Shown: one piece after another, positions 26,712 to 29,333 of the stretch
Numbering within the stretch: position 1 is the first letter of the stretch
Layout: the number at the start of each line of letters is the position of its first letter
NCBI GenBank assembly: GCA_002269645.1
Contig: NIVC01000581.1
Coordinates: forward strand, 310,001-374,000
Reading direction: 5' to 3'
DNA from: Macrostomum lignano
Lineage: Eukaryota
Length of the DNA stretch: 64,000 nucleotides
Made by a program: the position numbers and the translations under genes
Notes under the pieces: generated by a model
What the model was told of the DNA's origin: nothing
The model's input: only the letters and a program-made list of their open reading frames with translations
Database searches by the model: none

Positions 26712-29333
26712 GAGTCTTTCCTCTCCCACGGGCCGCTCTCTCGCCTGGAGAGCGAGAACAACGCCGTGGCCATAGACATCGGCGAGGTCCTGGCCGGCAA
26801 CAATCGCACCCGCGGGGAGCCCAAAGACTTTGAGCTGCTAAAAGTGCTCGGACGGGGCGGCTACGGTAAAGTTTTCCTGGCCAAGAAGCTGAGCGGAGCG
26901 GACCGGAACACCCTGTATGCCATGAAGGTGCTCCGCAAGGCCACGCTGATCCGCAACCAGATCGACGCCGAGCACACCAAGTCCGAGCGAAACATCCTCG
27001 AGGCCATCCGGCACCCGTTTCTGGTTCAGCTGCACTACGCATTTCAAACCCCGGGCCGGCTCTACCTCATCCTGGAGTTCCTGGCCGGTGGCGAGCTGTT
27101 CTCGCAGCTCGAGAGGGAGGGCATCCTGTCCGAGGAGACGGCCAGATTCTACCTGAGCGAGATTGTGCTCGCGCTGGGACACCTGCACTCTAACGGCATT
27201 GTGTACCGCGACCTCAAGCCTGAGAACATTCTGCTGTCAAAGACTGGTGAGTCTGACGTAATAGTTAGCTGTTGTGGCAGTTTTATGGGTAGATACACTA
27301 TTGGAGATTGGGATTGTGTTCTCTGCAGAGTCATTCTAAAAACAAAGAACACGTTTTAAGTGTAGGTGCGAGCCCGTAGCTGGGCGCATCACAGACTACC
27401 AACTCCATGTTGAATTGGTCTGATATGAAATCGTGAAGAAAGAGAAAATCCTCCCGGTTTCTCGGGCTCAGTGATATTCGATGAAAACCCACGCAGGTCA
27501 TATCAAGCTGACAGACTTTGGCCTCAGCAAAGTGGCCGTGAACGAGGGCAGCATCACCAACACATTCTGCGGCACTATCGACTACATGGCGCCCGAGATC
27601 ATCCTGCGGGAGGGCCACGGCCGCGCCGTGGACTGGTGGAGTCTGGGCACCCTCATGTACGACATGCTGTCAGGCGGACCGCCCTTCAGCGGCGACACCC
27701 GCAAGGAGACCATTGAGCGCATCATCAAGGCCAAGCTGTCGGTGCCCGAGTACCTCAGTGACGAGGCCCGCTCGCTGCTGCGAGGCCTTTTGAATCGCCG
27801 GGTGCGCGACAGAATCGGCTCCGGACCAACCGGTGTCGAGGAGCTCAAACGGCACCCGTTCTTCCGCAGCGTTGACTGGCGTCGGGTGCGCGACCTCAAC
27901 TACAGCCCGCCGTTCCGGCCCGCCTCCGTGTTGGTGAGGCCTGCGGGAGCGCCTTCTGTGGGAATTTCCTTTGATTGCAAAGTTCTTGGAAACTAGTGTG
28001 GACAGTGCATCAGTAGTGTGTACAGTATCTTAGTAGTATGGACAGTGTATCAGTAGTATGGACAGTGTATCAGTAGTATGGACAGTGTATCAGTAGTATG
28101 GACAGTGTATCAGTAGCATGGGTAGTGTATCAGTAGTCTGTACAGTATCTTAATAGTATGGACAGTGTATCAGTAGTATGAACAGTGCATCAGTAGGTAT
28201 GGGCAGTATATTAGCAGGGCACACTGTGAGCCAGTCCCAACCCCGGAACCTCATTGTGGCAGGCCTCAGACGCGGACGTGTCCCTGTTTGACCCGAAATT
28301 CACGCACGAAAACTCAGTGGAGTCGCCTGAGGACGACTCTGAGCTGACGGCTTCCGCTGCCAAACTGTTTGAGGTTTGCCGATGCAGATGCAGTCTCTGA
28401 GTTGAAGTTTTTCTGTCTTTTCAAAAATCTACTTGAAGTAGCGCATACGCAAACAACCCTTTTAGGGCTTCACCTTTGTTGACCCCGCTGTGCTGGACGT
28501 GGTCACTAAGGAGCCTTGGAGCGCAGGCAGCCGGCAAGCAGCGGTTGCAAGGCGGCGCTCCAGTCTGACCGGCGCCACTGGGTGAGACAGGCTGAGATTC
28601 ACTCTGAGCTGAGATTCACTCTCGGCTGAGATTCACTCTGAGCTGAGATTCACTCTTGGGCTGAGATTAACTCTGAGGTGAGATTCACTCTGAGCTGAGA
28701 TTCACTCTGAGCTGAGATTCACTCTGAGCTGAGGTTCACTCTGAGCTGAGATTCACTCTGAGCTGAGATTCACTCTGAGCTGAGATTCACTCTGAGCTGA
28801 GATTCACTCTGAGCTGAGGTTCACTCTGAGCTGAGATTCACTCTGAGCTGAGATTCACTCTGGGCTGAGATTCACTCTGAGCTGAGATTCACTCTGGGCT
28901 GAGATTCACTCTGAGCGGAGATTCACTCTGGACACAGTCACACAGACAGAAGTATTGGCGAGTCACACTGTTTCCATGGAAATTTTAATTCATTGGGTGC
29001 CCCCACCGCAGCTTCGGAGCCCCAGAAGCCGCGGCAGCCGCCAGACATCCCTCCGCGATTGCCGAGGAGCCCTCAGGAAAGCAAAAGCAGCAGAAAGAGC
29101 AGCTACAGCAGAAGCAAGTGCAACAGAAGGCAACACAGCAGAAGCAGCAAGCCTCCTCAGCTCGGATCAGCTCGCCAGTCTCCTCCAAAGAGCAGAAGAG
29201 GCAAGCCAAGGAGCAGAAGACGCGGGAGAAGCAGCGGCAGAAGGAGCTGCAGCGGAACCGGCCGCGGCCGAACAATCTGAGCGACTCGGGCAGCGATGAC
29301 TCTGGCCGGCCGGCCAAGTGCGGTCTGATGTGA
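26712..29333 (+). CDS. S6K: Ribosomal protein S6 kinase (p70 S6K family, AGC kinase), 5'-partial, with a K/Q/R-rich tail ending in CaaX
   Basis: Exons 26712-27246, 27497-27933, 28263-28373, 28466-28581, 29012-29333 (GT-AG, in frame). Motifs [51 protein letters not shown], turn motif VESP, hydrophobic motif LFEGFTFV. No ATG is visible upstream of the kinase domain. Confidence 0.9.
27994..28210. repeat. 20-bp intronic minisatellite
   Basis: unit cagtagtatggacagtgtat. Confidence 0.9.
28591..28930. repeat. 17-bp intronic minisatellite, ~20 copies
   Basis: unit gctgagattcactctga. Confidence 0.95.

Follow-up and report, generated by a model that had tools for sequence, protein, structure and literature searches.

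We analysed a 64,000-nucleotide stretch of the genome of the flatworm Macrostomum lignano (assembly GCA_002269645.1, contig NIVC01000581.1, forward-strand positions 310,001 to 374,000; hereafter the window, numbered from its first letter), which contains a six-exon gene for a p70-type ribosomal S6 kinase (S6K). In the last exon of this gene, the acidic tail usual in flatworm S6Ks is exchanged for a disordered, basic tail with a CaaX box of the farnesyltransferase type, which probably acts as a membrane tether. A lipid-anchored S6K is the best reading of the gene because the CaaX box is genuine and conserved. In the literature searched, no prenylated or CaaX-bearing S6K is described for any organism, and nothing relevant on flatworm S6K was found either. 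In the databases, the CaaX-bearing S6Ks are labelled as 'hypothetical protein' or 'S6K beta'.

Blocks bounded by GT..AG were joined over positions 25500-30500, giving a gene on the + strand (25607-29333) that encodes 537 residues. The closest database match of the product is M. lignano BOX15_Mlig026841g1 (P0001), with 96% identity, and the UniProt entry A0A1I8H131 (P0121) is 100% identical to its C-terminal 206 residues. The M. lignano assembly is highly duplicated (PMC5730564). An earlier note on this DNA, made from the letters alone, had called the product an S6 kinase, and the searches confirm this and specify the p70 type. The Pfam domains found are Pkinase (237 bits) and Pkinase_C (36 bits). 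Among solved structures, human RPS6KB1 (S6K1) ranks first with 463 bits, aligned over 337 residues of the core and C-terminal segment, followed by RSK2 (389), Akt2 (297), and SGK1 (290). A neighbour-joining tree of 342 kinase-region columns, with RSK as the outgroup, places the window protein within the S6K clade. The catalytic Lys, HRD, DFG, the T-loop Thr, the turn-motif Ser-Pro, and the hydrophobic-motif Thr (FEGFTFV; split by intron 4, span 28368-28480) are all found. The protein is therefore, judged by its sequence, a catalytically intact kinase of the p70-S6K family, and every sequence feature looked for in that family is present except the TOR signalling (TOS) motif. No N-terminal TOS motif (F-D-I-D-L type, raptor docking) was found in the N-terminus of the window protein or of P0001 (MERDYKHSVKSDSSEENVSFIGDK...), and TOS-like motifs are present in paralogues (FDIEL in P0005, FELEL and FDFEL in P0006 and P0008). 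The TOS motif belongs to TORC1 regulation and not to the kinase fold. Downstream of the hydrophobic motif, RRRSSL looks like the RRRLSSL sequence in ribosomal protein S6; similar R-rich segments recur among the flatworm S6Ks compared, and the pseudosubstrate role is putative.

The CaaX end is reached by the splice that the earlier note had proposed, in which GT at 28582 and AG at 29010-29011 join exon 5 to exon 6. GG and C across the junction form Gly431, and the protein ends in RPAKCGLM. This junction is used in two independent M. lignano annotations, P0001, which is RNA-seq-built and comes from a 96%-identical copy, and P0121. The GenBank models of the assembly were derived from StringTie, TACO, and de novo RNA-seq assemblies with TransDecoder open reading frames (ORFs) (PMC5730564). 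All three frames of exon 6 are open, and hence, from the sequence alone, the CaaX end hangs wholly on the splice phase; there are 90 AG dinucleotides between 28591 and 29330, and 6 of them would give the CGLM end. The acceptor CCCACCGCAG is unchanged in the 96%-identical gene copy L001, from which exon 6 of the window differs by two indels of 9 nt each. Between the window and L001, the synonymous divergence (dS) in the CaaX frame is 0.145 and the nonsynonymous divergence (dN) 0.027-0.031, giving a ratio (omega) of 0.18-0.21. The other two frames of exon 6 have omega values of 1.6 and 2.3, and the kinase part has 0.13. The tail is under purifying selection in the CaaX frame. In the paralogue Mlig030058 (P0005, 60% identical overall), where an intron of the same phase interrupts the same site, only the CaaX frame is open, and the protein ends in KQKDKCRLM. 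Two unnamed S6K models among the ENA proteins (P0009 and P0010) end in ...RRISGAGSSMGW, just past RRxS, where the mapped genes have the tail intron; these gene calls may have continued into the intron without taking in the last exon.

Conservation of the box was examined by a survey of the C-termini of the 270 S6K/RSK-type proteins with more than 200 aa that were fetched. Cys at position -4 was found in 31 proteins, and all 31 end in K-C-x-[VILT]-M, with V, I, L, or T as the a2 residue and Met as the last residue throughout. From residue frequencies, we estimate a random expectation of about 1 in 100,000 for such a C-terminus. The named members are all flatworm S6Ks, the remainder being unnamed Logan and MetaClust proteins and one JGI environmental contig, and the pattern is absent from every non-flatworm S6K or RSK among the fetched proteins. 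The boxes are CSVM (13), CSIM (6), CRLM (3), CGLM (2), CCVM (2), CNIM (2), CCTM (1), CCIM (1), and CSTM (1). The Macrostomum carriers are the window protein, P0001, P0121, P0005, P0205, and P0206, the last three with a KCRLM end and an intron matching that of the window gene in position and phase; the other 25 belong to trematodes or cestodes or are environmental or unnamed. A profile of the tail matched the Pkinase_C part of Paragonimus westermani 'S6K beta' (P0172), which ends in SKCSVM, and the onward search from P0172 exposed a parasite clade. Word-index searches and exhaustive profile searches of representatives found no relative of the K/Q-rich tail body beyond M. lignano, only Pkinase_C being matched.

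The trematode carriers are Paragonimus, Opisthorchis, Calicophoron, Dicrocoelium, Heterobilharzia, Trichobilharzia, and four Schistosoma species, and the cestode carriers are Taenia, Hymenolepis, Rodentolepis, Mesocestoides, Sparganum, and Spirometra. Their proteins, and that of the environmental contig (L003), end in K-C-(S/C/N)-(V/I/T)-M. The carrier worms also retain a canonical S6K with an acidic F-x-F-A-E-D-F-E-D-M tail. In S. mansoni, the CaaX form is a 721-aa ORF found on 150 Logan contigs, none of them longer than 3.2 kb, which implies spliced transcripts, and the JGI form (L003) is an unbroken ORF on a 1.9-kb transcript-like contig. The farnesyltransferase-type CaaX end recognised by the earlier note is kept in a paralogue and in other flatworm S6Ks, and the occurrence of K-C-x-[VILT]-M in 31 flatworm S6Ks shows it to be a real, selected feature.

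The tail of the window protein (106 aa) has a net charge of +11 and is predicted to be mostly disordered. The AlphaFold2 model of P0001 has low overall confidence (mean pLDDT, the predicted local distance difference test score, of 57.6); in it the last 23 residues (509-531), which follow the basic helix, have pLDDT <50 and no secondary structure. The model thereby predicts flexible, exposed residues ahead of the box. A D-S-G-x-x-(x)-S motif lies 10-16 residues before the CaaX Cys in both Macrostomum paralogues (DSGSDDS in the window, DSGQQS in P0005). It is among the few conserved points of the tail and has a likeness to the beta-TrCP phosphodegron.

The origin of the CaaX kinases was traced by the neighbour-joining tree and by intron maps, for which ten flatworm S6K genes were mapped by exact spliced mapping. 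In the tree, the two Macrostomum CaaX genes form a pair (bootstrap 90%), which is nested in a Macrostomum-only group with the canonical genes Mlig018773 and Mlig000742 (97%), and the parasite CaaX clade stands alone (100%). The Macrostomum CaaX genes have one five-intron structure in common with Mlig018773 and Mlig000742, both canonical. In canonical Mlig004448 and Mlig021692, four of the five positions are kept, two introns are extra, and the tail intron is missing. The parasite CaaX genes (Taenia, Paragonimus) share introns between GYG(K/T) and VFL, IEY and MAPE, and SGG and PPF with the cestode canonical gene (Rodentolepis). The Macrostomum and parasite CaaX kinases thus seem to come from separate duplications, a reading that is provisional because the neighbour-joining method is crude and the parasite clade sits on a long branch. 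The tail intron, which follows two codon bases a few residues after RRRxS, occurs in the same phase in 8 of the 10 mapped genes, canonical and CaaX alike, and is ancient. The tail bodies were compared by shuffling tests after removal of K-CaaX. The window tail and that of P0005 gave p 0.036, the Macrostomum tails against those of the parasite clade or of L004, the locus of Mlig018773, gave 0.08-0.81, and Taenia against JGI within the clade gave 0.01. Common ancestry of the Macrostomum and parasite tail exons was considered and could not be demonstrated, the similarity in these tests being at most marginal.

The canonical gene Mlig018773 offers a possible way to reconcile the separate duplications with the single terminal pattern. 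A scan for C-x-x-x-stop in its last intron (L004) revealed an in-phase acceptor, tttaaag followed by C at 13975, which opens a 63-codon ORF ending in QQQKCHLM before the stop. We estimate the chance of such a CaaX end in a 2.2-kb intron at <0.001. Across the three copies (L004, L011, and L012), the candidate exon shows one synonymous change in 190 nt, while 13-15 of 282 nt (about 5%) differ in the intron just upstream (Fisher p = 0.011 versus the exon). This conserved in-phase ORF suggests an alternative CaaX last exon in Mlig018773 and perhaps a two-tailed ancestral gene. It is possible, though doubtful, that alternative last exons were the original switch: in the ancestral gene, the tail intron would have been followed by two exons, CaaX (proximal) and acidic (distal, F-x-F-E-E/D), and duplicates of this gene would have specialised, with the window gene retaining the CaaX exon only and Mlig018773 still having both. 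The model accounts for the presence of a single K-C-x-[VILT]-M pattern in 31 ends despite the separate kinase duplications, and it agrees with the shared place and phase of the tail intron in genes of both types and with the near invariance of the KCHLM exon beside a diverged intron. Several observations oppose it. The exact CaaX isoform predicted for Mlig018773 was not found in the protein collection, and no poly(A) signal lies close to the stop of the candidate exon. No CaaX ORF was found in Mlig000742, in the canonical genes with an intron-less tail (Mlig004448 and Mlig021692), or in the canonical gene of Rodentolepis, and there is no relic of an acidic exon in or downstream of the window gene, L001, or L002. 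Beyond the box, the tail bodies are at most marginally similar in the shuffling tests given above. An ancient switchable lipid anchor, in which the ancestral CaaX (membrane) and acidic (soluble) last exons were repeatedly resolved into paralogues, including those of schistosomes and tapeworms, remains correspondingly tentative.

The reading that we prefer for the window gene, a lipid-anchored S6K, depends on prenylation of its last exon's product. Substrates of protein farnesyltransferase (FTase) have V, I, L, M, or T as the a2 residue, and their last residue is M, S, Q, A, or C, as opposed to L or F for geranylgeranyltransferase I (GGTase-I). CGLM fits the rules for FTase, with the Cys at 534 of 537 residues, Leu as a2, and Met as X. 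With Met at the end and Leu at a2, Cys534 would be farnesylated by FTase; by the usual route through RCE1 and ICMT, -GLM would then be cut off and the Cys carboxymethylated. The lipid and the upstream basic helix (25-45 residues before), possibly aided by the net charge of +11, would give weak, reversible membrane binding. Speculatively, the kinase might be concentrated in this way at membranes where TORC1/Rheb and PDK1, which activate it, or certain substrates are found, and tethering might partly stand in for raptor docking in the window paralogue, which lacks a TOS motif. Some points weigh against this reading. FTase, RCE1, and ICMT are assumed in M. lignano from their universality in eukaryotes. 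Gly or Arg as the a1 residue (CGLM, CRLM) is less typical than the CSVM and CSIM of the parasite clade. The 15 residues before Cys534 are net acidic, with neither an adjacent polybasic patch nor a palmitoylation Cys. For the window copy itself, transcript support consists of annotations.

That the K-C-x-[VILT]-M end serves a purpose other than prenylation is unlikely. Other conceivable roles are those of a C-terminal peptide ligand (PDZ-type or otherwise), of a degron at this end, or of a redox-active or palmitoylated Cys, and the window tail has no second membrane signal beside the box; the extreme C-terminus of mammalian S6K1 is reportedly a PDZ ligand for neurabin. The positions that are fixed are nevertheless the FTase determinants (Cys at -4, V/I/L/T at -2, and Met at the end), with the a1 residue varying among S, C, N, G, R, and H. 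CSVM, CSIM, and CCVM are the boxes of the proven farnesylated proteins Rheb, prelamin A, and PRL-3, which also argues for farnesylation of the flatworm kinases.

The earlier note had further described the CaaX tail as switchable by intron retention. The stop on which this was based is present, as GGG and then TGA (28583-28585) follow when the intron is left unspliced, but the switch is without support: the stop is generic, and no retained-intron product occurs among the database proteins. The stop is immediate because a GT(A/G)A donor placed after two codon bases always gives TAA or TGA, and 13 of the 17 introns of this phase in the ten flatworm S6K genes have an immediate stop. The orthologous tail introns of Mlig018773/L004 (GTGGGT) and Rodentolepis (GTGCGT) have none. 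The retention stop was therefore rejected as a sign of regulation and is regarded as a by-product of the donor consensus. A regulated retention of intron 5 that yields a soluble, tail-less S6K ending in ...LTGATG is slightly less probable even than a non-prenylated box. The same immediate stop is present in the copy L001 and the paralogue L002. In addition, decay dependent on the exon junction complex needs a downstream exon junction, and intron 5 is the last intron, so the retained transcript could escape it. Against these points stand the generic nature of the stop, its absence from the orthologous tail introns of L004 and L007, and the failure of database searches to find any protein ending in ...LTGATG. 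Moreover, intron 5 is 84% identical between the copies, like the other introns, its repeat copy number varies, and nothing in it looks regulatory; its length is 430 nt in the window and 674 nt in L001. The exon in Mlig018773 is a better candidate for a switch than intron retention. Least probable by a wide measure is a gene-model or frame artefact, in which a different acceptor or frame is used in the actual transcript, CaaX being the chance ORF end of a low-complexity exon: the three open frames of exon 6 and the 6 of 90 AGs leave room for it, but the junction shared by two annotations with an identical acceptor in L001, indels in multiples of three, the frame-specific omega, and the support of the end by the paralogue and by conservation across classes all contradict it.

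As a soluble protein, S6K is the standard read-out of TORC1 in textbooks, and the cellular site at which TORC1 meets its substrates is still under debate. If true, a lipid-anchored S6K would show that membrane tethering is a viable, selected design that exists beside an ordinary S6K in free-living and parasitic flatworms. The CaaX S6K of schistosomes, liver and lung flukes, and tapeworms has a box of the Rheb or lamin type, and the kinase would likely be an added target of farnesyltransferase inhibitors in these worms. If the box arose independently in the two lineages, a farnesylated TORC1 effector would have evolved convergently; if the idea of alternative last exons is true, this would be a neat case of alternative exons split between gene duplicates. 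Transgenesis is established in M. lignano (PMC5730564), making the reading of a lipid-anchored kinase directly testable there.

Table 1. Coordinates of the S6K gene in the window and of the candidate alternative exon of Mlig018773.
Feature	Position	Strand	Details
Exon 1	25607-25699	+	Met1-Lys31, MERDYKHSV...; start agrees with the transcript-based model P0001
MITE-like insertion (miniature inverted-repeat transposable element), intron 1	25993-26414		422 bp; 40-nt terminal inverted repeats; 7-bp AATAAAG target-site duplication
Exon 2	26712-27246	+	kinase N-lobe; catalytic Lys in YAMKVL (26916-26933); YRDLKPEN (27204-27227)
Exon 3	27497-27933	+	DFG (27514-27522), activation loop (27562-27597), C-lobe
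Exon 4	28263-28373	+	AGC C-terminal segment; turn motif VESPEDD (28317-28337); hydrophobic-motif residues 1-2
Exon 5	28466-28581	+	hydrophobic-motif GFTFV; Thr395 at 28472-28474; putative S6-like pseudosubstrate RRRSSL (28550-28567); GG as last two codon bases
Intron 5	28582-29011	+	GTGAGA...CCGCAG; 17-bp x 20 tandem repeat (28591-28930); TGA 28583-28585 if unspliced
Exon 6	29012-29333	+	106-aa K/Q/R-rich tail; basic helix region (29181-29270); DSGSDDS (29283-29303); stop 29331-29333
K-C-G-L-M end (K533-C534-G535-L536-M537)	29316-29330	+	joined frame read to the stop
CaaX box C534-G-L-M537	29319-29330	+	Cys534, predicted farnesyl acceptor
Candidate alternative last exon, Mlig018773	L004 13975-14164 (NIVC01000945.1 about 71257-71446)		also in L011 and L012

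Several repeats and transposon-like sequences accompany the gene. The MITE-like element in intron 1 has a 16-bp tandem duplication within each terminal inverted repeat; it is missing from L001, the gene copy with 96% identity, and the insertion is therefore recent or polymorphic. Introns 3 and 5 consist mostly of tandem minisatellites, with units of 20 bp x 11 (27994-28211) and 17 bp x 20 (28591-28930), respectively. Beyond the S6K stop, degenerate GGTAACTTTTGG / GGCAACTT repeats occupy 29750-30130, and the first AATAAA past the stop is at 30118. Elsewhere in the window, a tandem array of at least six genes or gene fragments of the carboxylesterase/cholinesterase family (PF00135) lies on the - strand at 963-17008. 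A 946-aa unbroken ORF with AT-rich flanks (32576-35416, + strand) has no Pfam match and may encode a mobile-element protein, and another ORF (37342-38991) has a 16-aa repeat (SALRSGGTDQSSSTET), present 11 times, at its end. An Rfam scan of the window gave no matches.

Compared with known S6Ks, the window protein shares with human S6K1/RPS6KB1, human S6K2, and Drosophila S6K the AGC core, the T-loop TFCGT, the turn-motif S-P, and F-x-G-F-T-F, after which comes a basic stretch (RRRSSL) that may act as a pseudosubstrate. S6K1 has a Ser-Pro-rich autoinhibitory tail and a PDZ ligand, and S6K2 has a nuclear localisation signal and a proline-rich tail, whereas the tail of the window protein ends in CaaX and, in a further difference, its N-terminus has no TOS motif. 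The canonical flatworm S6Ks (M. lignano Mlig018773, 000742, 021692, and 004448; P0012, P0017, P0024, P0239, and P0275 of cestodes and trematodes) are 61-72% identical to it in the kinase region, and the genes Mlig018773 and Mlig000742 have introns at the same five sites, that of the tail intron after RRRxS among them. Unlike the window protein, the canonical S6Ks end in an acidic last exon, F-x-F-E-(E/D)-x-(F)-E-D-M, without a Cys at -4, and most have a TOS-like F-D-[IF]-E-L. The parasite-clade CaaX S6Ks (S. mansoni P0218, T. solium P0225, P. westermani P0172/P0207) resemble the window protein in the K-C-x-[VIT]-M end and in the place and phase of the tail intron. They differ in forming a separate, fast-evolving clade with Ser for Thr in the hydrophobic motif, and in their kinase-domain introns, which are those of the parasites' own canonical S6K. 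Their tails are also longer, with 230-330 aa; in trematodes, cestodes, and the JGI form (e.g. P0207, P0218, P0225, and P0229) the CaaX tail has an acidic run and then a conserved (E/D)(E/D)N[VI]PGA[KQ]xI.

Other kinases are known to be prenylated, namely GRK1 (farnesyl), GRK7 (geranylgeranyl), and CaMKI-gamma, of which GRK1 and GRK7 are AGC kinases. Farnesylation of LKB1/STK11 has also been reported (PMC3898322). In all four, as predicted here, a soluble Ser/Thr kinase acquires membrane affinity through a C-terminal CaaX, but they belong to other kinase families and pathways, and none of them is a TORC1 effector. Rheb, which is only farnesylated, binds endomembranes weakly and transiently (PMC6789162). 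As in Rheb, the flatworm CaaX S6Ks lack a palmitoylation site, and most of them also lack a polybasic stretch; weak, transient endomembrane binding would therefore be expected of them too. The box is of the Rheb type (CSVM), and the identical CSVM is found in 13 flatworm S6Ks. Rheb is a GTPase upstream of TORC1, whereas in flatworms the box is carried by a TORC1 substrate.

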